The notes under the pieces are model-generated. The model did no database searches, was not told the origin of the DNA, and was given only the letters and a program-made list of their open reading frames with translations. A program made the position numbers and the translations under genes. From sequence record NC_019401.1: a stretch of DNA of 64,000 nucleotides. The stretch is one strand, 5' to 3'. This document shows positions 1-64,000 of the stretch, in pieces (position 1 is the stretch's first letter; each line of letters begins with the position of its first letter).

Positions 1-1
1 T

Positions 2-331
2 TCAGCAATTATTTCTGAACTAACTAAACCTCTTACTTCACAACAAAAACAAATTATGGAATCTCTACTTTCTGCAACTCCAACCGAGAAGCTAAAAGAA
101 GATTTCAGTAAGTACCATAAGTCTGTACTTAAAGGTACTGTAAATGAATCTGCTGCTAATTCTAGCCGTCCAGCAGTTAATACAAAGGCTAAAAATACTT
201 TAACGGAAGGTAGTAAAGTTATTACTGGTAACCGTGAAAGTAATTTCATTAAAAACGAAGAACTATCTTCTGACGATATGAGTTTCCTAGATGAAATCGC
301 TAAATTGTCAGGAATGGATAAAAAACGTTAA
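2..331 (+). CDS. C-terminal part of probable prohead core/scaffold protein (5' truncated by window edge)
   Basis: Frame is open from base 2; lies directly upstream of the major capsid gene like T4 gp22; contains VNE-S and LTE-G protease-type sites. Confidence 0.6.
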   Translation, partial: SAIISELTKPLTSQQKQIMESLLSATPTEKLKEDFSKYHKSVLKGTVNESAANSSRPAVNTKAKNTLTEGSKVITGNRESNFIKNEELSSDDMSFLDEIAKLSGMDKKR

Positions 332-408
332 TTATTAAATGCTAATTTTTCTGTAAGATAAATAAAAGCATACAGAAAAGCAAAAAATATCTTTTTAAGG
401 AGATTATA

Positions 409-1584
409 ATGTCACAACTATTAACTGAATCTAAATGGGCTGCTGTAAAAGATAAGCTTGTTGAAGGTCTTTCTGGTAATCGTAAAACTGTAATGGAATC
501 AGTTCTAGATAACCAACGTAAAGTAATGCTACGTGAATCTGCAACCGCTGGTGCAACTTCTGCTGGTAACATCGCTACACTAAACAAGGTAATTCTACCT
601 ATTATTCGTCGTGTAATGCCAACCGTTATTGCTAATGAAATCATCGGTGTTCAACCAATGACCGGCCCTGTTGGTCAAATCCATACCCTACGTGTACAAT
701 ACGCTGATAACGCTCCAGGTGTTGTTGCAGGTGAAGAAGCTCTATCACCATACAAAATCGCTAAGTCTTATACTGGTGAAATTAACTCTGACAATACCGC
801 ACCACGTGCTGCACCAACTTCTCAACTAGAAGGTGTTATGGGTCGTCGTGTTAACATCCGTATTCTACGTGAAACCGTAGAAGCTCAATCTCGTCGTCTA
901 TCTGCTCGTTGGACTGTTGAATCTGCACAAGATGCACAAGCTCAACACGGTATTGACGTTGAAGCTGAACTAATGGCTGCAATCGCTCAAGAAATCACTA
1001 CTGAGATCGACCAAGAACTACTAGCTCGTCTACGTGCTCTACCAGGTGCTGCTGCTGTTGTTTACGATCAATCTAAAGTTACTGGTGTTGCTACCTTCGT
1101 TGGTGATGAACATGCTGCTCTAGCTACTCTAATCAACCGTCAAGCAAACGAAGTTGCTCGTCGTACCAAACGTGGTGCTGCAAACTGGGCCGTTGTTTCT
1201 CCAACCGCTCTAACTATTCTTCAGTCTGCAACTACTTCTAGTTTTGCACGTACTACTGAAGGTACTTTTGAAGCTCCAACTAACGTTAAATTCGTTGGTG
1301 TTCTAAACTCTACTATGCGTGTATACGTTGATACCTATGCTGATGACAGTACTGATGTACTAATCGGTTATAAAGGTAACCAAGAGACTGATGCTGGTGC
1401 ATTCTATTGCCCATACATCCCACTAATGGCTTCTGGTACTGTGATGGACCCAAATACTGGTGAACTAGTAACTAGCTTCCTAACTCGTTATGGCTATGTA
1501 CAACTAACTGATTCTACCAGTTCACTTGGGAATGCAGCCGATTACTACAGCAAAATTGCTATTCGTAACGTTACATTCATGTAA
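409..1584 (+). CDS. gp23: Major capsid protein, T4 gp23-like
   Basis: Motifs IIRRVMPTVIANEIIGVQPMTGPVGQI, RRLSARWTVE, AFYCPYIPL, TRYG; RBS AGGAG; strong codon bias. Confidence 0.97.
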   Translation: MSQLLTESKWAAVKDKLVEGLSGNRKTVMESVLDNQRKVMLRESATAGATSAGNIATLNKVILPIIRRVMPTVIANEIIGVQPMTGPVGQIHTLRVQYADNAPGVVAGEEALSPYKIAKSYTGEINSDNTAPRAAPTSQLEGVMGRRVNIRILRETVEAQSRRLSARWTVESAQDAQAQHGIDVEAELMAAIAQEITTEIDQELLARLRALPGAAAVVYDQSKVTGVATFVGDEHAALATLINRQANEVARRTKRGAANWAVVSPTALTILQSATTSSFARTTEGTFEAPTNVKFVGVLNSTMRVYVDTYADDSTDVLIGYKGNQETDAGAFYCPYIPLMASGTVMDPNTGELVTSFLTRYGYVQLTDSTSSLGNAADYYSKIAIRNVTFM

Positions 1585-1625
1585 TAAAGTAGTTATTTAG
1601 ATTTAAATAAGTCTTGATATAAATT

Positions 1626-1655
1626 AAAAAAAAGGATGCTTCGGCATCCTTTTTT
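1626..1655 (+). terminator. Rho-independent terminator after capsid gene
   Basis: AAGGATGC-TTCG-GCATCCTT hairpin with A-run before and T-run after. Confidence 0.9.
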
Positions 1656-1673
1656 ACATTATAAGGAAACAAA

Positions 1674-1907
1674 GTGTTAACAGCTAATGAAATAGTAGTA
1701 GAACCCGGAAATGCTATAATTAAAAAGAAACCTGCAAGTTATTTTGAAGATGGTAAGGATGCAGTACTGTTAGAATCTCAGATAAAGAATACATTCAATT
1801 GCTCAGTACTGAAAAAAGATGATTTACCTGATGGATACACTGAAACCGTCAATGCTAGTGATATTGATGTACTAATGGAAATGATAAATTCGTTTGTTCA
1901 ACGGTAA
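1674..1907 (+). CDS. Hypothetical protein (77 aa, GTG start)
   Basis: ORF with AAGGA RBS. Confidence 0.6.
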   Translation: MLTANEIVVEPGNAIIKKKPASYFEDGKDAVLLESQIKNTFNCSVLKKDDLPDGYTETVNASDIDVLMEMINSFVQR

Positions 1908-1923
1908 ATAGCTCTATGATGTA

Positions 1924-1952
1924 TGAAACGTGTACATTTTTTATGGTATAAT
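1924..1952 (+). promoter_or_regulatory. Conserved phage promoter TGAAAC-N17-TATAAT with extended -10 TG
   Basis: TGAAACGTGTACATTTTTTATGGTATAAT; one of 13 copies with identical spacing. Confidence 0.85.
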
Positions 1953-1967
1953 CATGGAGACAAAAAT

Positions 1968-2412: not shown

Positions 2413-2724
2413 ATGTCTAATCAAATTTGCTACGTTATTGTTAATCAAGCTTGGCCTGAATGGGTTAAAATAGGATTTACTTCAAAAGAAGAAATGAAAA
2501 CTCGTTTGAGTACATATCAAACTGGTTCTCCGTTTAGAGACTATGAAGTTTATCATGAAGTGTATTTTGAAGATGCAAAAGCTGCTGAAAAAGAAGTTAA
2601 TAAAAGATTGAAGCAGATGAATGCAACTCAAGGTACTGGTAAAGAGTGGTATAAAATGCCAAAGAAACTAGCTGCTAATATGATTGATGCGGTTCTGGAT
2701 GATTTGGAAGAAGGATTACTCTAA
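2413..2724 (+). CDS. T5orf172/GIY-YIG-like domain protein
   Basis: CYVIVNQAWPEWVKIGFT...RLSTYQTGSPFRDY...EKEV...GKEWY pattern. Confidence 0.8.
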   Translation: MSNQICYVIVNQAWPEWVKIGFTSKEEMKTRLSTYQTGSPFRDYEVYHEVYFEDAKAAEKEVNKRLKQMNATQGTGKEWYKMPKKLAANMIDAVLDDLEEGLL

Positions 2725-2727
2725 AAC

Positions 2728-2768: not shown

Positions 2769-4388
2769 ATGAGTATAAGATTTAATCATGCTACCAATAC
2801 AATGACTAGCACGAATTCTGCTTCTATAGTCGTAGAAGGTGGAACACCTAGTGTTCCACGTCCTTTGAGACTGAATGCTTCTTCGGTTGTTTTTCCGAAT
2901 AAAGCATTACCAACAGGTGAAGCTGGTGCAGTAGTTTTCGATACTGCATCAAAAACATTAAAATACCATGATGGTTTCCAATGGGTGGAATTATTATCAC
3001 AAGATGAAATACTTGAACCAATTCAAATTTCACTAACTGAAATTTATAACCAATTAGCTAACCGTGTTAGTTCTGTGACATATAGTTCTAGTGCAGTTCC
3101 AAGTGCAAGTGTTAGTGGAACTAACTTAAATATCGTTTTCCCAACAAGTTCTGGAGGCAGTGGGGCCGCCGTTCCTGGCTTGTTTACTTCATCACCTCCC
3201 GGAAGTATAATGCATTATTCTTTAACTTCTGGACAATCAGTAGCAAGTATTCGAGAACAAATGAGCGGAGTTAGTGGTGGACAAAATGGTAGAAATGGTA
3301 CAGTTAGTGCACCTTTTGTAACTAAAACTGGTTGGTGTTTTGCAGATGGTATGTACTGGACATGGAATGGTTCAGATGGTGCAGTAACTAAAGTTGTACC
3401 GAACTTGAACCAAGAAGCTTACTTGAAAGGTATTACCACAAGTGGTGTAACAAAAACTGATGCTATTATAACAGGTTCAGGAACTATCAGTTCAACCTCA
3501 ATCACAATGCCTGAACACTATCACGGTACTGGTATGATGCGTGGCTTAGGTGGAGATCACGGTGATGATGGTGTATTCATTATTGGTAAAACTTGGAATG
3601 ATGGTCGTACCTATACTGGTGCAATCATTACTGGTGATAAACAACAATATTGGACAACTGCTGCTGACGGCTCTGACACTCGTCGTGCTTTCACAACAAC
3701 TTATCCAATTTACCAAAGTGGTAATACTTCAACACATACCCATAACTTAACGGGTATTGATGTTGGACATTTTAACGTTGCAGTACTGTACAATATTGCA
3801 GAACCAAGCTTAGCATTGAATCAAGCCAATGGTGATGCTCGCTATGTGTTAAAATCCGGTGATGTTATGAGTGGTTCATTAACTATTGCCAACAGTGCAG
3901 CCATTCAAGCTAATGATACTAACTTAATATTATGGTTCCGTAATGCTAGTGGTGGTGAACGTGGAGCTATCTATCATAGTACTACAACTAACACCTTACG
4001 ATTCCGTAGTGCTGGTGGCACAGAAATGGCATTGTCCAACACTGGCGTATTAACTGTAGCTGGATTGACAGTATCAAGCCAAGGAGCTACGGTCGGTGGA
4101 CGTAATATTGTTAGATCAATTAATGGGTCAACTGCTGATGCTAATGGTAATGTAACATTGAGTATTACCGGTGGTGTAGTAACGAACGTTCGCCGTGGTG
4201 CAGAAATTGCAGTTAACCGTTATTCGTTAGGTGATGAATCATTTGTTTATCGTTGTGGCGAAGGCCAGTATGTAACTGGTTTCAATATTTGGTCAAAAAG
4301 TAATAATAATGATGAATTCCGTGATATGTATTCTAGACCTGTACAAATTCTAATTGATGGAACGTGGAGAACTATTTCTGATGTTTAA
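2769..4388 (+). CDS. Tail fibre protein with collar-like domain
   Basis: Gly/Ser/Thr-rich; collar-like PPGSIMHY...GWCFADG...VPNLN; HYH and HTH metal-type motifs; fibre-tip C-terminus ...YSRPVQILIDGTWRTI; followed by a chaperone. Confidence 0.8.
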   Translation: MSIRFNHATNTMTSTNSASIVVEGGTPSVPRPLRLNASSVVFPNKALPTGEAGAVVFDTASKTLKYHDGFQWVELLSQDEILEPIQISLTEIYNQLANRVSSVTYSSSAVPSASVSGTNLNIVFPTSSGGSGAAVPGLFTSSPPGSIMHYSLTSGQSVASIREQMSGVSGGQNGRNGTVSAPFVTKTGWCFADGMYWTWNGSDGAVTKVVPNLNQEAYLKGITTSGVTKTDAIITGSGTISSTSITMPEHYHGTGMMRGLGGDHGDDGVFIIGKTWNDGRTYTGAIITGDKQQYWTTAADGSDTRRAFTTTYPIYQSGNTSTHTHNLTGIDVGHFNVAVLYNIAEPSLALNQANGDARYVLKSGDVMSGSLTIANSAAIQANDTNLILWFRNASGGERGAIYHSTTTNTLRFRSAGGTEMALSNTGVLTVAGLTVSSQGATVGGRNIVRSINGSTADANGNVTLSITGGVVTNVRRGAEIAVNRYSLGDESFVYRCGEGQYVTGFNIWSKSNNNDEFRDMYSRPVQILIDGTWRTISDV

Positions 4389-4880: not shown

Positions 4881-5183
4881 ATGGCTAAGAAGACTGAATC
4901 TAAAATTGAAGCACATGAGCTAAATGACGTACAACGTAAAAAACTCAAAGACGGCTTGAATTCCGCAGTAGTCCAACTAACCCACCTAGACACACTAAAA
5001 GAATCTTACGCTGATTTCATGGATACTCTAGCTGATGAACTTGGTTTAGACAAAGCTAAACTAAAATCTGCTGCAATGCGTATCTATAAACAAGATTTCT
5101 TTGATAAAGTTCGTGCACAAGACGAAGTAGAAACTATTCTAACAGTTTCTGGTAATCTTGCACAAATGGAAGATGACGAATAA
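4881..5183 (+). CDS. T4 DsbA-like dsDNA-binding protein
   Basis: ADELGLDKAKLKSAAMRIYKQDF...EVETIL parallels T4 DsbA AKDELGVDGKMFNRLLALYHKD...EVVELY. Confidence 0.65.
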   Translation: MAKKTESKIEAHELNDVQRKKLKDGLNSAVVQLTHLDTLKESYADFMDTLADELGLDKAKLKSAAMRIYKQDFFDKVRAQDEVETILTVSGNLAQMEDDE

Positions 5184-5188
5184 TTAAA

Positions 5189-5212
5189 TAATGCCCCTTA
5201 ATTGGGGCATTA
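5189..5212 (+). terminator. Hairpin between dsbA-like gene and polymerase
   Basis: TAATGCCCC-TTAATT-GGGGCATTA perfect stem, followed by AT-rich run. Confidence 0.6.
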
Positions 5213-5244
5213 TATTTTAAGTGTGTGTAACATAAGGAGATAAG

Positions 5245-8200
5245 ATGTACGTAGATGGATATATGGATAGGAAAAAGACTGGTGAAGTACTTCACGTAGC
5301 TGAACGTGTTAATGGTCAGCGTATTTTGCGTGAAATTGAACCAGTATATGAGTACTATGTAGAGTCTCCGCGAGGTGAATACAAAACTATCAATGGTACT
5401 TTAGCTGAGAAGTTTGAATTTACCCGTTTTTCAGAAATGAAACGACAAATGGATGCATTGCCAAGTACTGCTAAGATTTATGAAGCAGATTGTAATGTAA
5501 CATTTAAAACATTAGCTAAACACTATATGGGTAAGTCATCTCCTGATCTTAATATCGTTTTCTTCGATATTGAAACAGACTTTCACCCTAAATTCGGATA
5601 TGCTCAACCAAGCGACCCGTTTAACCGTGTAACTGCTATTTCATTATATCAAAGCTGGACTGGTAAGGATTATGTTCTTACAATGGCTCCAGTAGATATG
5701 CCAATTTACGAAGCTCAGGACATTATCAATCGTTTGAATGATGAAACGAATGATCCTAACAGCGTTGTAATTCTTTACACTGAAGAAACTGAAATGTTTG
5801 AAACTTTCTTTGAGTTAATTGAAGATAGTGACGTACTTTCAGGCTGGAACAGTGAATTCTTTGATATTCCATACATGGTTAACCGAACCAGAAAGATCTT
5901 TAACGAAGCTACATTAGCTCGTTGGTGTTTATGGAATAAAAAACCAAACGCTCGCGAAGCAGATATGTTTGGTAAAACCATTGTTACCTATGATCTGGTT
6001 GGACGTGTTCATTTAGATTATCTTGCATTGTATAAAAAACATGCTGGTCAAGTAGAACAATCATATAAACTAGACTATATCGCTGAAAAAGTAACTGGTG
6101 AAAACAAAGTATCATATGATGGTTCATTGGACAAATTGTATCGTGAAGATTATGAAACATTTCTACGATATTCTAAGCAGGATAGCATCCTACTAAAGAA
6201 AATCGATGAAAAAATGGACTTTATCAACCTACACAACCGATTAGCACACAAAGAATGCGTACTAATCAGTACTACAATGGGTTCAGTAGCACTAATCGAC
6301 ACCGCAATCATTAACCTTGCACATCAACGTGGTGAAGTAGTATTCAATAAACGTAAACTTGATGATGATGAACAAGATTTTGAGTATCAAGACTACGAAA
6401 TTGACATGGATGATGATGAAGACGATGAAGTACAGGCAGGTTCGAAAGCTGCTGGTGCTTGGGTACAAGATCCAGTACTAGGTTTGATTGATTTCTTGGG
6501 TTGTGTTGACTTTAACTCACTATATCCAACTGTACTCCGTACATTAGGTATGAGTACTGAATGTATTCTCGGTCAGCTTCGTCAGACATATACTGATAAG
6601 TATTTGGCTGATAAAATCGAAGAACAGAGAGTTAAATGGGCTAGAAATGGTGGTCGTGGTAAATTTGAACCAAAATGGACTGAAGCATGGCATGGTTTGT
6701 TTGCTAGTGTTGAATTTACAATGGTTCGTGAGAAATCACAAGAAGTAATTACCGTTGATCTAGAAGATGGCACATCATTTGAAGCAACTGGTGCTGAACT
6801 TTATGATATTATCTTCGGTGAAGATAGTACTATTGTACTAAGTGCTAACGGAACATTATTTGATAAGACTAAGTACGGTGTAATTCCAGAAATTCTTACA
6901 ATGTGGTATTCTGAACGTAAAGCACAACAGAAAATGGTCATCGACTATAAACATTTGGCAACAGATGGTTGGGAAATTCCAGAAGAAGCAGTTCAAGCTA
7001 TCGAAAAAGAACTACAGTCGCTATCTTTCGGTACTGGAATCTATAAAACAAACTTACATGAAGATGATCCAATCTATCAGATGCGTTTAGCACTTGGTAA
7101 AAATGATTATGCTCAAATGGCAAAACTTATCGCTGATAATGGTATGCGTATTGAAGATAATCATATTTTCGTAGCTGATTCTGATAAAAAGTATTGTAAA
7201 ACACAATCTGCTTTCTGGAAACAGAACCAACAGATCCGTAAGATTCTTCTAAACTCACTATATGGTGCGTTGTTGAACAAAGGTTCTCGCTTCTTTGATA
7301 AACGTCTAGGTCAATCAGTTACATTAACTGGTCGTAGTATGACTAAGCACCTAGCAAGTAAAATTAATGAAGTTTGCACTGAAACTTACGATCATAGTGG
7401 TGGTGTGGTAGTATATGGTGATACTGACTCAGTATATTTCAGTGTTGCACACTACTATAAAGAGAATGACATTCCGTTTGAAATGTCAAAAGATGAAGTT
7501 GTTGAACTTTATCAAATGATTGGTGATACCGTAGGTGCATCTTTCCCTGAATTTATGGATAAAACCTTTAATACTGGTATTGAAAAGGGTAAAATCGTGG
7601 GTGCAGACTTAGAAATGGTCGGTTCTCGTGGTCTATTCTTGAAGAAAAAGCGTTATGCTATTCTAAAATATTGGGAAGATGGATTCCGTTTAGATGTGGA
7701 TGGTAAACCTGGTAAAATTAAAGCAATGGGTCTTGAAATTAAACGTTCAGATACACCAAAATACATTCAAAACTTCCTAGAAGAAACGTTGATTGCATTA
7801 CTTATTGGTGAAACCGAAGAAGAATTACGTGCTCGTGTACGTGCATTCAAGAAAGAGTTTAAAGATAAGCCTAGTGTAGAGAAAGGATCGCCAAAAACAG
7901 TAAAAAATTACACCAACAAAGAAAAAGAATATCAGGATACTGGTAAATGTTCTGTTGGACACGTGTTGGCGGCTATACAATGGAACAAACTTCGTGAATT
8001 AAACGATGATAAATCAGTTCCAGAAGCTACTGACGGTACTAAAGTCATTGTATGTGACCTAAAACCAAATCCATTAGGCATCAAAAAGATTGGATATCCA
8101 ATAGATTGTGCTGATTATCTACCAGAATGGTATCTAGAACTTCCATTTGATGATGATACAATGGAAAAAGCTGTATTAACTAAGAAATTAGGTAATATTT

Positions 8201-8277
8201 TCGGTATTTTGGATATGGATATTGGTATTGATGAGAAAAGTACAATTGAATTGAACACTGGCTTCTTTGATTGGTAA
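5245..8277 (+). CDS. gp43: Family B DNA polymerase (gp43-like)
   Basis: ExoI DIETD, ExoII GWNSEFFDIPY, ExoIII YSKQD; polymerase motifs DFNSLYP, KILLNSLYG, YGDTDS, KKRY. Confidence 0.97.
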   Translation: MYVDGYMDRKKTGEVLHVAERVNGQRILREIEPVYEYYVESPRGEYKTINGTLAEKFEFTRFSEMKRQMDALPSTAKIYEADCNVTFKTLAKHYMGKSSPDLNIVFFDIETDFHPKFGYAQPSDPFNRVTAISLYQSWTGKDYVLTMAPVDMPIYEAQDIINRLNDETNDPNSVVILYTEETEMFETFFELIEDSDVLSGWNSEFFDIPYMVNRTRKIFNEATLARWCLWNKKPNAREADMFGKTIVTYDLVGRVHLDYLALYKKHAGQVEQSYKLDYIAEKVTGENKVSYDGSLDKLYREDYETFLRYSKQDSILLKKIDEKMDFINLHNRLAHKECVLISTTMGSVALIDTAIINLAHQRGEVVFNKRKLDDDEQDFEYQDYEIDMDDDEDDEVQAGSKAAGAWVQDPVLGLIDFLGCVDFNSLYPTVLRTLGMSTECILGQLRQTYTDKYLADKIEEQRVKWARNGGRGKFEPKWTEAWHGLFASVEFTMVREKSQEVITVDLEDGTSFEATGAELYDIIFGEDSTIVLSANGTLFDKTKYGVIPEILTMWYSERKAQQKMVIDYKHLATDGWEIPEEAVQAIEKELQSLSFGTGIYKTNLHEDDPIYQMRLALGKNDYAQMAKLIADNGMRIEDNHIFVADSDKKYCKTQSAFWKQNQQIRKILLNSLYGALLNKGSRFFDKRLGQSVTLTGRSMTKHLASKINEVCTETYDHSGGVVVYGDTDSVYFSVAHYYKENDIPFEMSKDEVVELYQMIGDTVGASFPEFMDKTFNTGIEKGKIVGADLEMVGSRGLFLKKKRYAILKYWEDGFRLDVDGKPGKIKAMGLEIKRSDTPKYIQNFLEETLIALLIGETEEELRARVRAFKKEFKDKPSVEKGSPKTVKNYTNKEKEYQDTGKCSVGHVLAAIQWNKLRELNDDKSVPEATDGTKVIVCDLKPNPLGIKKIGYPIDCADYLPEWYLELPFDDDTMEKAVLTKKLGNIFGILDMDIGIDEKSTIELNTGFFDW

Positions 8278-8292
8278 TAAAAGGAAAATAAA

Positions 8293-8802
8293 ATGAGTAA
8301 TGAGACAAACATTTACCAACGTATTGGTGAAAGTTTAGCATCGTCAGGTAAGCATGAAATTATTGCTGCAAATACCCCTGCGGAAGAAGCAATTCTGCTT
8401 CGTGCTGGATTTACCAAGATTGGTTCTATGAAAAATGACAATGGTAACATTGTCAATTTATATAAATTCGATAAACAAGTAAAAGAAGTTGTTAGAGTCG
8501 TTGAAGTTCCTAAAAAAGACCAATCAACTTGGCCTTGGAATGATCAAACGAATCCATTCACTAAACCTAATCCTGGTATTTGGTATTATAATCAAAATAA
8601 TCCATTGTATACCTATGGAAATAGTACTGGTGATAATGTTCACCTTCTATATAAAGGAAGTACTACATCTTCTATGGATGCAGCATATAATCCTTTGAGT
8701 ATTTTGAAAGATTATAGTTTCCCAAGTAATGAGGATACTAAAAAAATGACTGATCTCCTAAGTGTGATTGCTCAAAATACTCAACCAGTAAGAAACGTGT
8801 AA
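8293..8802 (+). CDS. Hypothetical protein
   Basis: ORF with AAGGA RBS. Confidence 0.7.
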   Translation: MSNETNIYQRIGESLASSGKHEIIAANTPAEEAILLRAGFTKIGSMKNDNGNIVNLYKFDKQVKEVVRVVEVPKKDQSTWPWNDQTNPFTKPNPGIWYYNQNNPLYTYGNSTGDNVHLLYKGSTTSSMDAAYNPLSILKDYSFPSNEDTKKMTDLLSVIAQNTQPVRNV

Positions 8803-8807
8803 AAAAA

Positions 8808-8836
8808 TGAAACGGGTACATTTTTTATGATATAAT
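8808..8836 (+). promoter_or_regulatory. Conserved phage promoter TGAAAC-N17-TATAAT
   Basis: TGAAACGGGTACATTTTTTATGATATAAT. Confidence 0.85.
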
Positions 8837-8865
8837 GTACCCGTAAACAAATGGAGAATGAACAA

Positions 8866-9597
8866 ATGGAATTACGAGACGTACTACGCGACCTAGTAAC
8901 TACTACTGCTGGCATTGATTTTGATTGTATCGCTATTTCTAGCGAAGATCGTGGTCAAGGTCAACGTGTATACATGGAAGCATATACTTCTGACAAAAAC
9001 TTAGTTATGCGAGCATATACTAAAGAAGACGTACCTGAAGTTGTTGGTCGTTTTGGTATTGGTAATCTTGGGATGCTACAAGGTCTACTAAATCTAAACG
9101 TTTACAAAACTGACAGTACTAAAATCAGTGTGAATGCAAAAGATGGCGTTGTTAAAAGCCTAACTTTCAATTCAGACGAAGCAAATACCAACTATCTAGT
9201 AGTTGCGGAAAAATATATTCCGAACCAACCACGATTCACTGACCAACCATATGACGTACAGGTTACACCTAGTGCCGCTAAGGTCAATGAACTAAAAAGT
9301 TTCTCAGGTGTGTTTAAATCATTTTCTGCTTTAGTCACTCCCTTTACTGAGGATAACAGCTTATATTTCTACGTTGGTGAAAAGAATAAAAACAACCACA
9401 CAGGTACTTTACTATTCGGAAAAACTGAAGGTGAACTATCTAAAGGTTATGGTTATCCGATTGACCGTGTACTTCAAGCATTAAACCGCGTATCTAATGC
9501 TGAAACTAAGTCACTTGGCTTTACCAAAACTGGTATGTTAAACGTAACTGTAGATACTGGTGTTGCAGTTTATAGCATCTACGTGAGTGGAAGCTAA
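8866..9597 (+). CDS. Probable sliding clamp (gp45-like)
   Basis: About 243 aa, near polymerase; FGIGNLGMLQGLLNL resembles gp45 VAIYDLNGFLGILSL; start at ATG 8866 after GGAG. Confidence 0.6.
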   Translation: MELRDVLRDLVTTTAGIDFDCIAISSEDRGQGQRVYMEAYTSDKNLVMRAYTKEDVPEVVGRFGIGNLGMLQGLLNLNVYKTDSTKISVNAKDGVVKSLTFNSDEANTNYLVVAEKYIPNQPRFTDQPYDVQVTPSAAKVNELKSFSGVFKSFSALVTPFTEDNSLYFYVGEKNKNNHTGTLLFGKTEGELSKGYGYPIDRVLQALNRVSNAETKSLGFTKTGMLNVTVDTGVAVYSIYVSGS

Positions 9598-9604
9598 TTT
9601 ATAT

Positions 9605-9631
9605 AGGGGAACTTAATGTTCCCCTTTTTTA
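9605..9631 (+). terminator. Rho-independent terminator
   Basis: GGGGAAC-TTAAT-GTTCCCC followed by T-run. Confidence 0.85.
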
Positions 9632-9645
9632 TATGGAATTAAAAA

Positions 9646-10251
9646 ATGAGTACACCAAGATTTATCGCTGACCTACACATGGGTCACAAAAACATCTGGA
9701 AATATCGTCCAGTGTTCGAAAGTACTTTACATAATGATCTTTATTTCCAGTATATTTTACAAGAAGTATGTACTAAAAGAGATACTATGTTCTTTTTGGG
9801 TGATATTCTCTTTGATGAAAAATATTTAGAATTTATCAAAGAATTGCCGGGAACAAAAATTCTCATTCTGGGAAATCACTGTACTGAATATGTAAGTACT
9901 TCCAAGTTGTGCCAAGCATTTGATGAAGTTCATGGTCTTTTGAAATATAAAGAGTACTGGTTATCACATGCTCCACTTCATCCTGAAGAATTACGTGGTA
10001 AAAGAAATGTTCACGGACACGTACATACTGAATCTGTGAATGATTTGAATTACTTGAACGTATCAGTTGATAGTTCATTTATGAACTTTTTCCCACGAAC
10101 CCTTCATGAAATTCGTCAAGGTTTTGAAACAGTAAATAACGAACAAAAGATTTTTGCAGGTGTTCCAAATGAAGATGCTTTGAGCGTCATCGAAAGTAAC
10201 CCAATTGCAAAAGCTGCTTATTATAAAGCATTAGAAGAATCGAGAAAATAA
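9646..10251 (+). CDS. Calcineurin-like metallophosphoesterase
   Basis: ADLHMGH, FLGD, LGNH, SHAP, HGHVH motifs. Confidence 0.9.
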   Translation: MSTPRFIADLHMGHKNIWKYRPVFESTLHNDLYFQYILQEVCTKRDTMFFLGDILFDEKYLEFIKELPGTKILILGNHCTEYVSTSKLCQAFDEVHGLLKYKEYWLSHAPLHPEELRGKRNVHGHVHTESVNDLNYLNVSVDSSFMNFFPRTLHEIRQGFETVNNEQKIFAGVPNEDALSVIESNPIAKAAYYKALEESRK

Positions 10252-10270
10252 CTGTTTAAAAGGAATTAAT

Positions 10271-10480
10271 ATGCCACTATATACTTATCGCTGTACACAT
10301 GACGAGTGTAAACAAAGTATTGAGAAAATTGTGAAGATTAAAGATCGAGAAGACGTGAAGTTTGATTGCCCTCACTGTGGTAATACACAATCTATGGAAT
10401 TTGAAAATTTCACGCCTGGCGATAAAGGAAGTAATCTATACTTCAAAGGAAACTGGTTTGCCAATACCGGTGGATATTAA
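10271..10480 (+). CDS. FmdB-like zinc-ribbon protein
   Basis: MPLYTYRC...C...CPHCG pattern. Confidence 0.8.
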   Translation: MPLYTYRCTHDECKQSIEKIVKIKDREDVKFDCPHCGNTQSMEFENFTPGDKGSNLYFKGNWFANTGGY

Positions 10481-10501
10481 AAACATTGAATGGAGTCAAA
10501 T

Positions 10502-10789
10502 ATGAGTTTACACGCAATTAACGATTATGTCATTGTAAAACTAATCGATAATACAAAACAAAGTTCTGCTGGTCTTATTTTGACTAGTGTTGAGCCTCCT
10601 TGCACTGGTGTAGTTATCACAGTCGGGCCAGGGCGAGTATTAAATGATGGTTCCCGCGAAGAACATAACATTGAAGTAGGGGATGTGATCGTTTTTGGTA
10701 AATCATCACTAAATATGCCACTAGAAGATGATGATCAAACCTTCTATGTTATGAAAACTAGTGATATATTTGGGAAGAAAAATGGCTAA
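10502..10789 (+). CDS. groES: GroES-like co-chaperonin
   Basis: LHAINDYVIVK, SSAGLIL, GVVITVGPGR, IEVGDVIVFGK. Confidence 0.85.
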   Translation: MSLHAINDYVIVKLIDNTKQSSAGLILTSVEPPCTGVVITVGPGRVLNDGSREEHNIEVGDVIVFGKSSLNMPLEDDDQTFYVMKTSDIFGKKNG

Positions 10790-11501
10790 GAGAATTTTAC
10801 CATTCTGGTTGTACCCCTCACATTGGGGTCTACGTGGACAAGCAAAAGAGCTTGCGGAAATTGATTTTTATTTTGAAGGATTGGAAGCGGCATTGAAACG
10901 TGCTGATATTCAATATCAGACGAAATATGATCGTGAAAAAGCAAAAAATGAAATTCAATTTAATCATGGTGTAATTGATGAATTTCAATTCGAAATGAAT
11001 AAAATTCAAATTGATTTTGATAATGCTGTAATTTCAAAGCATGTAGTCGAGCACAAACGTTTAGACGTTCAGCTTAAATTTGAAAAAATTGATGAACGGA
11101 CTTATGACACAGCTATTATTGAATTGATAAAAGATGAAGACCAGAAGTATAAAGCAGCGTTGGGTTTTGCTCTGAAATATAATGAAATTACACAGAATGA
11201 ATATGAAAAAGAACTGGCAACGTTCAATCGTGAGCCTTGGTTCTTATTTGACGTGGATTATGATGAACAAAATAACGATTTAATCATGTCTTTTGATTAT
11301 AACGAATATTTTTGGAAAAAACTACGTGAAGAAGGTCATCCAGGTAATGATGAGCATGAAATCATTGACAACTTTATTAAAGATTGGGGTCGGAAGTTAG
11401 CAACTGAGGATTACAGTGGTGACTACGACACAAAGTTGACAAGCGTAAACGACGAAATGAATCGCCAGACTGGTTCTGGTGAATTTAAGATTTATGAATA
11501 A
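10782..11501 (+). CDS. Hypothetical protein
   Basis: ORF coupled to groES stop; ATG 10782. Confidence 0.7.
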   Translation: MAKRILPFWLYPSHWGLRGQAKELAEIDFYFEGLEAALKRADIQYQTKYDREKAKNEIQFNHGVIDEFQFEMNKIQIDFDNAVISKHVVEHKRLDVQLKFEKIDERTYDTAIIELIKDEDQKYKAALGFALKYNEITQNEYEKELATFNREPWFLFDVDYDEQNNDLIMSFDYNEYFWKKLREEGHPGNDEHEIIDNFIKDWGRKLATEDYSGDYDTKLTSVNDEMNRQTGSGEFKIYE

Positions 11502-11530
11502 AAAAAGGAGAACATATGTTCTCCTTTTTC
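11500..11530. terminator. Bidirectional terminator between convergent genes
   Basis: AAAAAAGGAGAAC-ATAT-GTTCTCCTTTTT. Confidence 0.85.
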
Positions 11531-11545
11531 TTTTTATATTTTTAA

Positions 11546-12202
11546 TTAAATTGACAATGCTGGAATTGCTTTGTACACTTTAATTGCAAAGTTACCAGCA
11601 GCAGCAGCAGTAGCAGAAGAAGTTAGAATAACTTCAGTACCAGTACTGGTTAGCATTGGAACACCTGATAGATCATCAATTAGTAGACGACCTTCATCGA
11701 TAGAGTTCGCTGGAACACCTTGGAAAGTTGTAAGATCTTTATCAAACACAGTTGCACGTTCTACTAGGAAAGTAATAACGTTAGCAGAAGCTACAGAAGC
11801 AGCACCAGAAACGCCCGATGGAGCATTTTTGAAGCCAGAAACCGCAACACCTTGTGCAGTTAGTGAAGTACTTAGAACAACCGCACGTTGTTGAACAATG
11901 TCAATCACACGTTTAACGTTTGTTTGTGCAGCATAAGCAGCGGTATAATCAGCAGCCAATGAAACAGCTACGAAATCAGTACCGTCAACACGAACAACAC
12001 CTTTGTCATTCAAATACTTAACGATTACGTCAGCATCTACTGTGTTTAGGAAACGTTGAAGTTCAGCAAAAGATGCAACAGCACCAGTAACTTTAACAAC
12101 TACGTTGGAAGCCCCGCCGATAGCGACGGAAACAAGTGAGTTTTTACCCATGAAGTAGCCAAGTACGCCACTTTCAGAGAAACCATTAATACGTTCTAAC
12201 AT
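11546..12202 (-). CDS. Probable virion structural protein, paralogue of 12218..12778
   Basis: Ala/Val-rich, high-expression codon bias, shared motifs QRAVVLSTS / ITFLVER / IKVYKAIP. Confidence 0.6.
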   Translation of the reverse strand: MLERINGFSESGVLGYFMGKNSLVSVAIGGASNVVVKVTGAVASFAELQRFLNTVDADVIVKYLNDKGVVRVDGTDFVAVSLAADYTAAYAAQTNVKRVIDIVQQRAVVLSTSLTAQGVAVSGFKNAPSGVSGAASVASANVITFLVERATVFDKDLTTFQGVPANSIDEGRLLIDDLSGVPMLTSTGTEVILTSSATAAAAGNFAIKVYKAIPALSI

Positions 12203-12217
12203 ATTTTAATCTCCCTA

Positions 12218-12778
12218 TTATAGTAGTACTGGTAGTGCTTTAAACACTTTAACACCAACAGCAGCAGCAGCAGCAGGAGTACCATCTTTCTTCTGGAATA
12301 CACCAGCTTGAGCTAGGTTAGCAGCAATTTCAGCAGTTGGATCAACAGTTAGTGCATAAGTAGAACCAGGTTTGTTAACTTGTTTGGTAAACACGTCTTG
12401 ACGTTCAACGATAAAAGTAATACCGAAAGAATTATCAGCTAGAGTACCAGCTTTACCGAAAGCGATAACATTACCACCAACAGTTTCAAAGCCAGAAGCA
12501 GTAGGATCAACATCGTTAGAGAGAGCGGAAGTAGTTACTAGAACCGCACGTTGTGCAAGAGCTTGAGCAATGATAAATTGGTTTTTCTCAGCAGCAGATT
12601 TTGCAGTTTGAGCAGCGTTATCGCCAGCTTCAGTACCGTCAAATGCAACTGCGGATACGCCGATTTCTACATCAGCAGGTAGAGTAACAACAACAGTTAC
12701 GAAACCGTTATCACCACCCCAAAATTCGCGACTGTTAGCAGACATGCCGTAGTTACGATCAAAAGAATTAAGACTCAT
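12218..12778 (-). CDS. Probable virion structural protein, paralogue of 11546..12202
   Basis: Start MSLNSFDR after AGGAG RBS; motifs QRAVLVTTS / ITFIVER / VKVFKALP; late promoter upstream. Confidence 0.6.
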   Translation of the reverse strand: MSLNSFDRNYGMSANSREFWGGDNGFVTVVVTLPADVEIGVSAVAFDGTEAGDNAAQTAKSAAEKNQFIIAQALAQRAVLVTTSALSNDVDPTASGFETVGGNVIAFGKAGTLADNSFGITFIVERQDVFTKQVNKPGSTYALTVDPTAEIAANLAQAGVFQKKDGTPAAAAAVGVKVFKALPVLL

Positions 12779-12831
12779 AAAAAATCTCCTATGTCTAATT
12801 TGGTGCAGGTACTTATTGACCTGCTTAATGT

Positions 12832-12838
12832 TATTTAT
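12832..12838 (-). promoter_or_regulatory. T4-like late promoter (ATAAATA on minus strand)
   Basis: TATTTAT on + strand, about 55 bp upstream of the 12778 start. Confidence 0.55.
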
Positions 12839-12883
12839 CAAATCCTTTTCGTTAGTATTAATAACGTAAAAAAATTTAATTAA

Positions 12884-13959
<1,076 letters not shown>

Positions 13960-13960
<1 letters not shown>

Positions 13961-14460
13961 TGGCTATTTTAAAAATTCTTACTGAGTATTCATTCATTGT
14001 CGAAACCAGTACTGGTGAAAAGATGGGTATTCTTGTCAATTATGATGAAGGTACTACTGAACGTACTGGAATTGAGTTCTTCACTTCTGACGGTGCACTA
14101 AAGTTTGATAGTATTAAAGAACTTGAAGAACTTTTAGGTGAAGAATTCACCTATGAAGAAATCGAAGTTACTGACAGTACTAATGCGTCTAAAGCATTAG
14201 GTGACTATCCAATTAATGATACTGATAATATCATTGACATTCAATACGATGATCCTCTAGGAATTGGCTCATTCAGGAAAAGTGCTCGTTCCAAGAAGCG
14301 TTTTTATCCTGGCTGGTGGCTTGTTCGTGGTGAAAATGGTTCATATTTGCCACGATTGACATTGAGTGTTGACATATATAATGAAAGAAACAACACAGAA
14401 GCACTATATGGTCCATTTAAAACCTATATGGATGTTACATATACGCTAAAACAGCTATAA
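13960..14460 (+). CDS. Hypothetical protein
   Basis: ORF translationally coupled to rnh. Confidence 0.7.
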
Positions 14461-14503
14461 GATACACAGTACTGCTAGTATGCAGTACTTTTTAAGGAAG
14501 ATT

Positions 14504-16846
<2,343 letters not shown>

Positions 16847-16847
<1 letters not shown>

Positions 16848-16853
16848 TAAATA
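16847..16853 (+). promoter_or_regulatory. T4-like late promoter (ATAAATA)
   Basis: Upstream of 16884 ORF. Confidence 0.5.
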
Positions 16854-16871
16854 TATCTATACAAGATTTGA

Positions 16872-18173
<1,302 letters not shown>

Positions 18174-21154: not shown

Positions 21155-22063
21155 ATGCCAAAAAAATTAACGCCTGAAGAATTTTCCAAAAAGTCAAATG
21201 ATAAGTTTGGTGATAAATTTAAAATAATTACAGAATATGTTTCTTATGAAAAAAATATTATAATTTCCTGCAAAGAACATGGAAATTTTAACACAACCCC
21301 AAAAATACACTTAAAAGGTGCAGGTGGTTGTCCGAAATGTTCTGGTAATACTAAACAAACAACTGAAAATTTCATAGAACGATCAAAAAAGATTTATGGT
21401 GATACGTTTAACTACACGAACACAAATTACACAGGCATTAACAATAAAGTGATAATTACATGTAAAATACATGGTGATTTTGAACAATTTGTTAAACCTC
21501 ACCTTAATGGTTCTGGCTGCACAAAATGTTCAGGTAGAGCTAAACACACAACTGAGTCGTTTATTGAAGCATCTGTTAAGAAACATGGGAATGTATACGA
21601 TTATTCCAAAACCGCATATGGTAAAAATAATAAACAACAAGTTACAATAATATGTCCCACTCATGGTGAATTTGAACAGATTCCTAATAGTCATCTTTCT
21701 GGTAAAGGATGTGTTAAATGCTCAAATGAAGCATTATATTCTAAAGCAGTAAATGAAATTCTTAATTATTTTAAACAACATGATATAGAATATGAATTAG
21801 AAAAAACTTTTCCCGATTGTAAAAATATATTATCGCTTCGATATGATTTTTATATTCCATCAATCAATACTTGTATTGAATACGATGGACTACAGCATTT
21901 TGAAAGTTGTGGTTGGGGTGGAGAAGACAAATTAAAATTAACACAAGAAAATGATAAAATTAAAAATGAGTATTGTGAAAATAATAATATAGGTTTAGTT
22001 CGTATAAAATACAACGAAGACCACATTAAAATATTAAAAAGGATATTTAATGACAGAGCTTGA
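21155..22063 (+). mobile_element. Free-standing putative homing endonuclease (CxxHG Zn-repeats + PD-(D/E)xK/Vsr-like nuclease)
   Basis: Three C-x2-HG-x-F...HL-x-G-x-GC-x-KC repeats; C-terminal LRYDFYIPSINTCIEYDGLQH; more AT-rich codon usage than its neighbours. Confidence 0.75.
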
Positions 22064-29320: not shown

Positions 29321-29352
29321 ATTTAAAGTACTGACACAGACAAAGGATTTGA

Positions 29353-32181: not shown

Positions 32182-32182
32182 T

Positions 32183-32341: not shown

Positions 32342-32344
32342 TAA

Positions 32345-32743: not shown

Positions 32744-32788
32744 TAAATATCTTCATGTACAGAAAAGGTTTTTCTTTTTGGAGATAAT

Positions 32789-34754: not shown

Positions 34755-34786
34755 GGATATAAATTTCATTTATAAGGAAATAAACA

Positions 34787-35434: not shown

Positions 35435-35445
35435 CTGGAGGTACT

Positions 35446-40146: not shown

Positions 40147-40884
40147 ATGACATTATCAAGGAATGAAGTAATTTCAAGATTTATTGAAAAGCATGGAGAA
40201 CTATACAATTATAATGATTTTGTTTATAATGGAATGAGAACTAAATCAAAAATAAATTGTATATTGCATGGTGATTTTTTACAAGCACCCCACGCACATA
40301 TTAGAGGTCAGGGTTGCCCTAAATGCGGTACTATTAAAAATCATAAAAATAAATCGTCTTCAACGCAAGAACAAAGAAAAAGAAATTTTATAACAAAATC
40401 TAATATAGTACACAATGATAAGTACTGTTACGAAGAAGTAATTTATAAGACACGCAACGATTATGTAAAAATATATTGTCCTGATTGTCAAAAATACTTT
40501 TTACAAAAACCTAAAATTCATATAGAAGGAAAAGGTTGTAATTTGTGCCATAAGCATGGTTATAATAACAATATTAATGGTCATTTTTACATTCACAAAA
40601 TTACATATTTAAATGATATAATAGCATATAAGTTTGGTATTACAAATAAATCAGTATTACAACGTTTAAAACAGATAAACGCATCTAGTAAGTATGAGCA
40701 TGATATTATATTTCAATTTAATGATACTGGTCAAAATATTAGAAATTTGGAAACTTATATATTAAAAAATATTGATCATCAATTTCTGACAAAATCTGAA
40801 CTTTATGATGGCTACACTGAAACTATATGTCCATCCAATTTGGAATTGTTAGAGAATCTTATAATAAATTTTATTACAAATTAA
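40147..40884 (+). mobile_element. Free-standing putative homing endonuclease between nrdA and nrdB (CxxHG repeats + GIY-YIG/T5orf172-like domain)
   Basis: CILHGDF...HIRGQGCPKC; C-terminal FYIHKI...YKFGITN...QRLKQI; very AT-rich. Confidence 0.7.
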
Positions 40885-61742: not shown

Positions 61743-61770
61743 GTACCTATAAGAGTGAAAAGGGATTTTT

Positions 61771-62145: not shown

Positions 62146-62155
62146 GGAAATCGAA

Positions 62156-62476
62156 ATGGAGTCAAAAGTACTTACCGCTTGTAAAGGCAAAGTTCTAGTA
62201 TCTGATTTAGATATTGGTGAACAAAAATTAAAATCTGGTATCGTTCTTCGTAATGATGACGGTACTGTTCGCGGAGTACATAGCCGTTGGGCTAAGGTAT
62301 ATTCCGTTGGTGAAGATATTACTGAACTAAAACCAGGCGACTGGATTTTAGTTGCACATGGTAGATGGTCAAGAACTATTACCGTGGATGAAGTATCATT
62401 AAATTTAGTAGATTATCCAAAAGGCGTTCTCGCTGCTGCTGATGAACGTCCAGACTTCTTAGGTCTAGGATACTAA
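62156..62476 (+). CDS. Second GroES-like co-chaperonin (divergent, gp31-like)
   Basis: KVLV, KSGIVL, AKVYSVGEDITELKPGDWILV. Confidence 0.75.
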   Translation: MESKVLTACKGKVLVSDLDIGEQKLKSGIVLRNDDGTVRGVHSRWAKVYSVGEDITELKPGDWILVAHGRWSRTITVDEVSLNLVDYPKGVLAAADERPDFLGLGY

Positions 62477-62482
62477 CATATT

Positions 62483-62509
62483 GCCCTGCATAGTCAGGGC
62501 TTTCTTTTT
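62483..62509 (+). terminator. Rho-independent terminator
   Basis: GCCCTG-CATAGT-CAGGGC followed by TTTCTTTTT. Confidence 0.75.
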
Positions 62510-62520
62510 GTCGAAATTAT

Positions 62521-62811
62521 ATGAGCATAACCGCAGATAATAAATTTAATTTTTATGATGTAAAATTAACAAGTACTAACAAGTCTGGTAAATTTTATTT
62601 TCAGGCAACAAAAAACCGTTCTAGGGTATTTGAAGTAAGTGAAGATTTGTTTAAGACAATGCTGGTTTCAGCATCGAACATAAAAAATCAAGGACTTGAA
62701 AACCCAAAAATGGCTAACACGTTAGAGTACTTGCTAGACCAGATCGAAATGACAGAAGAAATATTTACAGCATTACTATATCCAGAATGGATTAATGAAA
62801 ACAAGGAATAA
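62521..62811 (+). CDS. Hypothetical protein
   Basis: ORF. Confidence 0.65.
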   Translation: MSITADNKFNFYDVKLTSTNKSGKFYFQATKNRSRVFEVSEDLFKTMLVSASNIKNQGLENPKMANTLEYLLDQIEMTEEIFTALLYPEWINENKE

Positions 62812-62813
62812 GC

Positions 62814-63770
62814 ATGACCACCACTCTATGGACTGAGAAATATCGCCCAAATGGTATTGAAGACTATGTGTTTAAAAACCCAGCGTTTAAGCTAAAAATG
62901 GAAGAATGGATCAGAACTGGTCAGATTCCACATATTGGGTTCTTCGGACCAGCAGGTACGGGTAAAACTTCAGCTATCAAAGTACTAATCAATGGGTTAG
63001 TGGAAAATGGTTTTGTTGACCCATCTGATGTAACAATTCTTAACATGTCAGATGAAGGTATGGATGCAGTACGTGAAAAGATTGATGCTGCTGCACGACT
63101 TTCAGCATTTGGTGACTACCGCATTTTTGTTCTTGAAGAAATGGAACAAATGGGTATCAAGGCACAAGGTTCACTAAAACGTATCATGGAAGATTATCAC
63201 GAGAATGCTCGTTTTATTCTTACATCAAATGAACCACACAAAATTCTCAAACCAATTATCTCTCGTGTACAATCAATTATGATTGAAAAACACGATCCAG
63301 ATGATTTTACTACTCGCATCATTGAAATTCTAGTCAATGAAGGTGTAGAGCTAGATTCAGAAGAAAGTCTAGATCTAGTTGATAAGTATATTAAATGTAC
63401 TTTTCCTGATTTCCGTAAAACATTGAACACTCTCCAGAGTTCAGTTGTTGATGGTAAATTAGTCAAGCTAGAAGACTCAATTGATAGTACTGCAAGTTAT
63501 CGAGCAGCTATTATTGAAGCACTAGAAGCAGGAAACATCCGTCAAATGCGTGAACAAATTGTACAGAATATTCCTGAAGATGAAATCGATGGTTTCTTCT
63601 CATTCTTGTACCGCAATGTTGATATGTTCACAAAAGATGAAATTAAAGAAATGAAGATCAAAGTTAAGATTCGCGATGCAGTAGTTAAGCAAGCATCGGT
63701 TTCTGACCGTGAGATGAACCTATCTGCACTTCTTTGTGAAGTGGATTTGATCTGCAACGACCAAATGTAA
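62814..63770 (+). CDS. gp44: Clamp loader large subunit (gp44/RFC-like AAA+)
   Basis: WTEKYRP, GPAGTGKT, LEEME, SRV, PDFRK. Confidence 0.93.
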   Translation: MTTTLWTEKYRPNGIEDYVFKNPAFKLKMEEWIRTGQIPHIGFFGPAGTGKTSAIKVLINGLVENGFVDPSDVTILNMSDEGMDAVREKIDAAARLSAFGDYRIFVLEEMEQMGIKAQGSLKRIMEDYHENARFILTSNEPHKILKPIISRVQSIMIEKHDPDDFTTRIIEILVNEGVELDSEESLDLVDKYIKCTFPDFRKTLNTLQSSVVDGKLVKLEDSIDSTASYRAAIIEALEAGNIRQMREQIVQNIPEDEIDGFFSFLYRNVDMFTKDEIKEMKIKVKIRDAVVKQASVSDREMNLSALLCEVDLICNDQM

Positions 63771-63778
63771 GGGAAGAA

Positions 63779-64000
63779 ATGACAAGCAAGCAAAAAGCCG
63801 TAATCTTGGATTGCGATGAGATTCTACTAAACCACTTAGGTGGTTTTAAAAAATACGTTCAAAAATATTACGATATTGAAACTGTTGGTGAACCACAGCA
63901 ATATAATTTACAAGATTGGTTATGTTGTGATGCTGAGCAAGTCATGGATTTGTTGAAGAACTTCAACTTTTATTCATATGAGTTTGGTCTATTAGAACCA
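63779..64000 (+). CDS. HAD-family 5'(3')-nucleotidase-like protein (3' truncated; not in supplied track)
   Basis: MTSKQKAVILDCDEILLN, HAD motif I DxD. Confidence 0.65.
   Translation, partial: MTSKQKAVILDCDEILLNHLGGFKKYVQKYYDIETVGEPQQYNLQDWLCCDAEQVMDLLKNFNFYSYEFGLLEP

Follow-up and report, generated by a model that had tools for sequence, protein, structure and literature searches.

AGTACT in the RaK2-like jumbo phages: an evenly spread palindrome that is independent of coding and paired in early promoters

Why a phage genome should be filled with copies of a single six-base palindrome is the question raised by the DNA considered here, a stretch of 64,000 bases (the window) from the genome of Cronobacter phage vB_CsaM_GAP32 (NC_019401.1 / JN882285.1), in which the word AGTACT was found once per 448 bp. 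A 12-kb part of the window agreed with the GAP32 record at 100% identity. GAP32 is a jumbo myovirus of the genus Mimasvirus with a genome of 358,663 bp. The window is 95% coding, has a G+C content of 35.6% and carries nearly all of its genes on the plus strand. Encoded in it are the major head protein, a tail fibre, ribonucleotide reductase, topoisomerase II, numerous small virion proteins and a T4-like module for replication and recombination; the recombination genes of GAP32 are T4-like (UvsX, gp46/47, Endo VII, Dda and UvsW-type helicases). A preliminary description, made from the letters of the window alone, had counted about 140 copies of AGTACT, had expected about 22 from the base composition at an estimated GC of about 34%, and had called the enrichment genome-wide. 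The exact count was 143 and the computed expectation 21.3, so that both figures were close and only the G+C content had been set slightly too low. The observation was confirmed and is stronger than first described. The enrichment proved to be genome-wide: 1011 copies were present in the 358.7 kb of the whole genome, about 11 times the expectation, and 989 in a 350-kb portion of it for which 92 were expected.

The excess stood far above most base-level null models. One hundred shuffles that preserved the dinucleotides of the window yielded 17.0±3.7 copies with a maximum of 27, and Markov models of the orders 1, 2, 3 and 4 predicted 17.4, 30.1, 61.8 and 125.6 copies, respectively. The order-4 figure comes near the observed 143 because the 5-mers entering it, AGTAC (220 copies) and GTACT (234 copies), consist mostly of AGTACT itself; it is not an independent null. 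Among all 4096 hexamers AGTACT had the highest z-score in the window, and the runner-up among the over-represented palindromes, AACGTT, was enriched 1.7-fold.

Nearly all sites of the window (140 of 143) lie in coding sequence, read as AGT-ACT in 69 cases, as nAG-TAC-Tnn in 19 and as nnA-GTA-CTn in 52. The preliminary description had argued from the presence of the word in all frames that protein sequence does not explain it, and had named a codon- or dicodon-preserving shuffle as the calculation in which a coding artefact would vanish. The enrichment stayed. Shuffling synonymous codons within genes gave 32.5±5.3 copies (maximum 49 in 1000 shuffles) and permuting codons 22.1±4.4, against 140 in the coding sequence. 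A third shuffle, run until converged, preserved the protein, the pooled codon usage and the dinucleotides at codon junctions and gave 35.6±5.6 copies with a maximum of 46; the excess over this null was 3.6- to 4.5-fold in each of the three frames. An artefact of codons or dicodons was thus ruled out, and the argument from the frames was borne out. The preference is visible in how dipeptides are spelled in the window: 69 of the 116 Ser-Thr pairs are written AGT-ACT (59%, where 15% or 17.5 pairs were expected), and 75 of the 132 Val-Leu pairs are written GTA-CTN (27.3 expected), 52 of these 75 following a codon that ends in A, for which the baseline is 34%. The dipeptides themselves are over-abundant, with 116 Ser-Thr against 81 expected and 132 Val-Leu against 108; therefore the DNA word appears to have shaped the protein sequence.

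The bases next to the word revealed its symmetry. At the 1011 genomic sites the base at position -1 was A in 383, C in 344, G in 98 and T in 186 cases, and the complement of the base at +1 was A in 339, C in 365, G in 59 and T in 248 cases. This preference is mirror-symmetric although one strand carries the overwhelming share of the genes; positions farther away are at background, and the extended unit reads H-AGTACT-D. Flanks that are symmetric under reverse complementation argue for a signal in double-stranded DNA, fitting a homodimeric protein on the duplex rather than a signal in RNA. Together with the excess above the codon nulls and the spelling of Ser-Thr, they agree with the earlier suggestion of a DNA-level signal. 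Words that differ from AGTACT in one base are mildly enriched in the window, at most 4-fold. The two neighbours expected from deamination occur at 1.45 times (AGTATT) and 1.03 times (AATACT) the expectation and hence are not depleted, and a drive by very-short-patch-like repair was ruled out on this ground.

The sites cover the genome more evenly than chance would place them. Beyond the first 50 kb of GAP32, the gaps between neighbouring sites had a coefficient of variation of 0.863, compared with 0.998±0.036 for random placement, and none of 5000 simulations was as low. In bins of 2 kb the ratio of variance to mean was 0.70 and no bin was empty (1.1 expected); short gaps below 50 bp (58 vs 88) and long gaps above 1.6 kb (9 vs 15) were both scarce. 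A search for periodic spacing detected none, only the under-dispersion and a class of pairs 20-22 bp apart that derives from promoters. The density is 6.6-6.8 sites per kb in the first 20 kb and 3.6-4.7 in the following 30 kb; it is 2.1-2.3 per kb in the conserved structural and replication core, which includes the window, and 2.5-2.9 in accessory regions of small genes. The dense left end matches the direct terminal repeat of 22,456 bp annotated in phage CBB, a second Mimasvirus with the same density profile (266 copies in its first 50 kb, 15 expected). In GAP32 1-25000 the non-coding DNA contains 72 sites in 7.0 kb, that is 10.3 per kb; outside this region non-coding DNA is no richer in AGTACT than coding DNA. 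A 50-kb sample of the Escherichia coli chromosome contained 3 copies (0.06 per kb, compared with 2.8 per kb in GAP32), a contrast of about 45-fold. The word is scarce in the annotated mobile endonuclease-type genes of GAP32, which contain 14 copies where 23.8 were expected (P=0.02), 6 of the 14 genes having none. For the endonuclease gene at window position 21155, GAP32_274, the preliminary description had noted the absence of the word, and no copy was counted. The product of this gene matches DUF723 and a treble-clef finger in Pfam, and the gene is missing at the equivalent locus in CBB and the phages XbC2, BF and PBECO4, where a UvsY-like gene is directly followed by a DnaQ-like exonuclease gene; it is a recent mobile insertion. 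The single copies that had been described for the capsid and the tail fibre gene were found for the capsid, while the tail fibre gene has two.

Relatives were compared on homologous core segments of about 43-49 kb. AGTACT was the top real hexamer, at 5-9 times the expectation, in GAP32 and in six further phages: CBB (106 vs 14.9 expected) and XbC2 (114 vs 15.8), both Mimasvirus, BF (Eneladusvirus, 106 vs 14.5), PBECO4 (Asteriusvirus, 73 vs 13.9), K64-1 (Alcyoneusvirus, 88 vs 9.7) and the unclassified XaC1 (128 vs 16.8). In the outgroups PA5oct (3 vs 14.4) and Atu_ph07 (1 vs 5.4), the next relatives by DNA polymerase with about 40% identity, the word is depleted about five-fold. Enrichment across the RaK2-like phages and depletion in their next relatives therefore indicate that the trait is old and common to the RaK2-like clade, as judged from the seven phages sampled. 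It has been kept over at least four genera, with hosts among Cronobacter, Pectobacterium, Serratia, Yersinia, Escherichia, Klebsiella and Xanthomonas.

The individual sites turn over. In the alignment of GAP32 and CBB, at 88% identity, 74 of 109 GAP32 sites are kept (68%, compared with 51% for coding hexamers generally), 35 sites are private to GAP32 and 29 to CBB, and the changes include transversions. A four-way alignment contained 90-102 sites per genome, 31 of them common to all four, with 11, 11, 22 and 22 lineage-private sites and 6, 7, 11 and 18 lineage-specific absences. As the private sites equal or exceed the absences, gain of AGTACT keeps pace with loss while the density stays fixed. 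The alignments suggest that selection acts weakly at a great number of positions to keep up density and coverage, in the way of codon bias or of bacterial uptake sequences.

A fixed arrangement of the word was found in the terminal-repeat region, in which site pairs at a distance of 20-22 bp, roughly two turns of the helix, stand out. The pairs sit in near-consensus sigma-70-type promoters, two of which are annotated in the GAP32 record as TTGACA(N15-17)TATAAT. One AGTACT either adjoins the -35 hexamer or shares one base with it; the second is placed in the spacer at a distance of one base from the -10 hexamer. A small early gene, preceded by its ribosome-binding site, begins 3' of the promoter. 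Ten such promoters were found in GAP32 (record 7.7-19.9 kb) and 14 in CBB (4900-17900); the spacer between the paired sites varies among them, and both AGTACT are invariant. Thus a dyad-symmetric site takes fixed positions relative to -35, spacer and -10 in several promoters, as is expected of a promoter operator. The layout is present as well in BF, Yen9-04, RaK2 and 121Q, and so is kept from GAP32 to RaK2. When the pattern AGTACT-N14-16-AGTACT-W-TATAAT was scanned over 2.9 million viral contigs, contigs with more than one match were, with few exceptions, jumbo contigs of 354-378 kb, plus a single fragment of 109 kb; the single matches in other contigs lie in DNA of ordinary AGTACT density and look like chance. 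With a relaxed pattern, an 11-kb stretch of RaK2 was seen to contain seven two-site promoters and 121Q three, of identical geometry; overall, the jumbo contigs with multiple matches measure 346-378 kb. AGTACT is lacking at three other annotated sigma-70-type promoters of GAP32, including one that lies within the repeat-equivalent region (record 17.5 kb). The two-site class is absent from the promoter tables of the CBB paper, and our literature searches yielded no description of two-site promoters or of AGTACT enrichment in phages. A few pairs of sites also form terminator-like hairpins. At window 14466-14496 the pair and its flanks make an 8-bp stem that is followed by a T run, and a second hairpin with a T run lies at GAP32 record 12808-12850; a similar AGTACT hairpin appears as a terminator in the supplement of the CBB paper.

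The even spread and the pairs in the earliest promoters make it most likely that AGTACT is read by a putative protein. We propose that H-AGTACT-D is a cis-acting, double-stranded, dyad-symmetric recognition site of a protein specific to the RaK2-like jumbo phages, a putative homodimer that would bind or modify the word. At the immediate-early promoters the occupancy or modification of the paired sites would control the access of host RNA polymerase in an operator-like manner; elsewhere, weak selection over very many positions would hold about one site per 350-400 bp and so mark the whole phage chromosome. For AGTACT as the site of a clade-specific dimeric DNA-binding or DNA-modifying protein that serves as early-promoter operator and genome-wide mark, we estimate a probability of roughly 0.4. 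Several observations speak against it. For a regulator of the classical helix-turn-helix kind, 6 bp make a short palindrome, and an operator role accounts for only a few dozen sites out of about 1000. Copying of a single promoter cassette might in principle have produced the promoter pairs, although the spacers are not alike. Where the three other genomes of the alignment agree, a site is lost from the fourth at a rate barely lower than for control hexamers, in what is a low-powered test; the selection per AGTACT site would therefore be weak. Finally, no AGTACT-reading protein was found: the Pfam matches of 10 endonuclease-annotated, 10 small virion and 10 early proteins were irrelevant to such a role. 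The genes annotated as HNH endonuclease encode only homing-endonuclease-type domains, and a ScaI-type or other restriction-fold protein among them was rejected. DNA-binding domains were not detected by Pfam in the ten scanned small virion proteins of the window or in the ten scanned products encoded 3' of the two-site promoters. GAP32 also encodes a helix-turn-helix protein, GAP32_488.

A closely related reading would make the readout a chemical one, with an orphan phage methyltransferase targeting AGTACT and the methyl mark serving as a self-mark or as a timer that tells parental from new DNA. The promoter pairs would then be methylation-sensitive switches, like GATC at promoters governed by Dam and SeqA; this overlaps with the proposed protein site except that modification is the readout. 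A 6-bp palindrome is typical of the target of a Type II-style methyltransferase, and GAP32 has several such enzymes. Pfam confirmed a Dam-type (PF05869), an N6/N4 (PF01555) and a C5 enzyme (PF00145), a further N6-adenine enzyme is annotated, and one weak match is to a generic methyltransferase. No restriction gene is annotated next to any of them, so that a palindromic target and orphan enzymes are both at hand. The distance of about two helical turns within the promoter pairs may resemble the spacing needed by binders of hemimethylated sites, which is known from SeqA. A SeqA-like reader was not found in GAP32, and neither the 11-fold enrichment nor the even spacing follows from methylation alone. 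Nor does the sequence tie any of the enzymes to AGTACT, and their phyletic patterns single out none: the PF01555 enzyme occurs in Mimasvirus and Eneladusvirus only, homologues of PF05869 are present at 40-55% identity in XaC1 and in large, Asteriusvirus-sized coliphages, and the C5 enzyme is widespread in the RaK2-like clade. DNA of RaK2 is reported to resist many restriction enzymes and to carry methylation at CpG only (PMC3622015). The C5 enzyme probably accounts for this CpG methylation; it is probably directed to CpG, which AGTACT does not contain. Our literature search found no methylome for the RaK2-like clade, and Mollivirus was discarded as a precedent, since the methylation reported there is at AGCACT. 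Taken together, methylation of AGTACT as the readout is possible and rather unlikely. Slightly more doubtful appears a role of the roughly 1000 evenly placed sites as a density-based identity mark, which would distinguish phage from host or parental from replicated DNA and would also switch the immediate-early promoters. The reader of such a mark, a putative phage protein, might be methylation-sensitive as well, and the mark might give a self-label to a virus without wholesale base substitution.

The dense ends of the genome bring a further function into view, in which AGTACT steers a nuclease or recombination: as an orientation-free stop for an exonuclease entering from the ends, as a mark that protects phage DNA against a nuclease degrading the host DNA, or as preferred nick or recombination sites that join terminal repeats into concatemers. 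The density peaks in the region found at both physical ends of CBB and falls inward from 7 to 4 and then 2-3 per kb, any break would lie within a few hundred bp of a site given the even coverage, the host sample is about 45-fold poorer in the word, and the phage relies on its T4-like recombination set. This reading leaves the fixed -35/-10 placement at early promoters unexplained, and no cognate nuclease was found by Pfam among the endonuclease-annotated proteins. Sites that are cut or nicked tend to vanish by conversion rather than to accumulate. Asymmetry and action in a single orientation mark the known Chi sites, and a palindrome can offer neither; of the functions offered in the preliminary description, a strictly Chi-like site is therefore unlikely, and a packaging signal is not favoured because about 1000 copies are dispersed. 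A nuclease or recombination signal is thus improbable. Much less is to be expected of a functionless by-product, whether of codon-pair bias, of context-dependent mutation bias or of very-short-patch-like repair that turns near-matches into AGTACT. It could appeal to the order-4 Markov value of 125.6, to the mild enrichment of one-mismatch neighbours and to a conservation of single sites that is modestly above background. Against this stand the 4-fold excess over shuffles preserving protein, codons and junctions in three frames, the strand-symmetric flanks, the undepleted AGTATT and AATACT, the transversions between GAP32 and CBB and the invariant position of AGTACT in promoters whose spacers diverge; even spacing, too, is not a product of mutation bias. 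Equally remote is an action of AGUACU in RNA, by cleavage or binding, or the binding of a host protein such as the nucleoid-occlusion factor SlmA. Since a palindrome is present in the transcript of either strand, the strand gives no argument against RNA; recognition of single-stranded RNA would not, however, lead one to expect flanks that are symmetric under reverse complementation, and the promoter sites lie upstream of the transcription starts. The published 12-bp SlmA site has AGTACT as its centre (PMC3020112). With the 12-bp consensus and its required outer G, T and purine as printed there, the 358.7 kb of GAP32 contained no full site, and the SlmA flanks were scarce around AGTACT (upstream 24 vs 34.9, downstream 15 vs 30.2), so that recruitment of SlmA was rejected.

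Among known systems, the genome-wide copies are reminiscent of the uptake signal sequences (USS) and DNA uptake sequences (DUS) of Haemophilus and Neisseria. These words are over-represented in all frames, shape peptides, are evenly spaced, turn over at constant density, are scarce in recently acquired genes and at times form inverted pairs that act as terminator stems. All-frame excess, even spacing, turnover at constant density and scarcity in recent acquisitions were likewise found for AGTACT. In contrast to USS and DUS, AGTACT belongs to a phage, is a 6-bp palindrome instead of an asymmetric 9-12-mer, comes without uptake machinery and has pairs in promoters; the annotation of GAP32, a lytic phage, contains no competence genes and thus no uptake receptor. 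The regulatory side resembles GATC with Dam and SeqA and to GANTC with CcrM of Caulobacter, which are palindromic words, potential targets of an orphan enzyme, with regulatory pairs at helical-turn spacing. As with Dam and SeqA, the pairs could switch promoters by replication state, and the copies across the genome could have another task. Unlike AGTACT, GATC shows no strong enrichment over the genome, and the methyltransferase repertoire of the RaK2-like clade varies. Dyad-symmetric sites overlapping early core promoters are also known from the operators of Arc and Mnt in phage P22, small dimeric repressors whose operators lie between -35 and -10, and from TF1 of the Bacillus phage SPO1, an abundant DNA-binding protein that prefers early-promoter sites in the terminal redundancy; AGTACT and the TF1 sites share the location in a terminal repeat. 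Such operators are few and longer, and none is known to be spread in about 1000 copies through coding DNA. Chi resembles AGTACT as an over-represented short word of a recombination-dependent genome that may play a part near DNA ends. Unlike Chi, which is asymmetric and depends on its orientation, AGTACT is palindromic with symmetric flanks and about ten times as dense as Chi in E. coli, and a helicase-nuclease of the RecBCD or AddAB type is not among the annotated genes of GAP32. The SlmA sites of E. coli share the central six bases, and the outer bases they require are absent in GAP32 (PMC3020112).

The abundance of AGTACT stands out against the general fate of palindromes in this genome. That phages avoid 6-bp palindromes, as the preliminary description had remarked, applies here to an extreme degree: of the 64 palindromic hexamers, 27 are missing altogether from 350 kb of GAP32, where about 800 copies were expected in sum, and 29 are absent from the window. 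CTTAAG occurs 0 times instead of 90 and GATATC 8 times instead of 91 in the 350 kb, and the tetramer GCGC is missing from the whole genome (319 expected). Mostly the same set of palindromes is missing in CBB, XbC2, BF, PBECO4, K64-1 and XaC1, with 23-32 per segment. A word avoided as a restriction site should be scarce, whereas AGTACT is 8-11 times over-represented. AACGTT, TTCGAA, ATCGAT, TACGTA and TCGCGA, which contain CG and have A/T ends, are not avoided in GAP32, and neither is CACGTG, while most other CG palindromes are absent; this pattern may be linked to the C5 methyltransferase of the clade and the methylated CpG of RaK2. PA5oct and Atu_ph07 miss a different set of palindromes, and PA5oct is enriched for CTGCAG and GGCGCC.

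The features of the window that bear on the distribution of the word are listed in Table 1.

Table 1. Location of the window and features in it, with their content of AGTACT (window positions unless stated otherwise)
Feature	Position	Strand	AGTACT and remarks
Window	GAP32 record 186001-250000		64,000 bases of Cronobacter phage vB_CsaM_GAP32
Major head protein gene	409..1584	+	1 site; 0.85 per kb, lowest density of the long genes
GAP32_253, T5orf172 (GIY-YIG-like) gene	2413..2724	+	0 sites
Tail fibre gene	2769..4388	+	2 sites
Intergenic site pair, GAP32_267 / terminase gene	14466..14496	+	sites 16 bp apart; terminator-like hairpin
GAP32_274, HNH/DUF723-type endonuclease gene	21155..22063	+	0 sites; 28.5% G+C
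Lone intergenic AGTACT	29327..29332		just 3' of a -10-like hexamer, before the primase gene
GAP32_299, endonuclease gene between two ribonucleotide reductase genes	40147..40884	+	1 site; 25% G+C

GAP32_299 was identified by Pfam as a DUF723/MUG113-type endonuclease. Its slot between the ribonucleotide reductase genes is variable: an unrelated open reading frame (ORF) occupies it in CBB and XbC2, annotated in CBB as similar to gp559 of Bacillus phage G, and it is empty in BF and PBECO4. The large terminase is annotated as two overlapping ORFs in GAP32 (window 14504-15211 and 15198-16847), an overlap likewise annotated in CBB, BF and XaC1. The two ORFs are adjacent without overlap in XbC2, the upstream one is called hypothetical in PBECO4, and K64-1 has a single coding sequence of 2.67 kb. 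Annotated small virion structural proteins are scattered among the replication genes (window 10782-12778, 26958-27308, 31912-35781, 37106-37684 and 42555-42935); the 10 that were scanned gave no meaningful Pfam match.

The promoter pairs, the density peak in the terminal repeat and the sharing of the word throughout the clade could not be revealed by the earlier reading of the window. Phage genomes are known for losing palindromes, and the RaK2-like lineage has purged 27 hexamers and GCGC, yet it keeps about 1000 copies of AGTACT at costs that are visible in codon choice and amino-acid pairs. This upkeep would imply a so far unrecognised system of protein-DNA recognition that is central to a large group of jumbo phages and tied to the genes they express first. 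AGTACT would add a case to the short list of DNA words under genome-wide selection, which includes Chi, uptake sequences, the FtsK-orienting polar sequences (KOPS) and GATC, and its density would serve as a simple signature for members of the clade in metagenomes.

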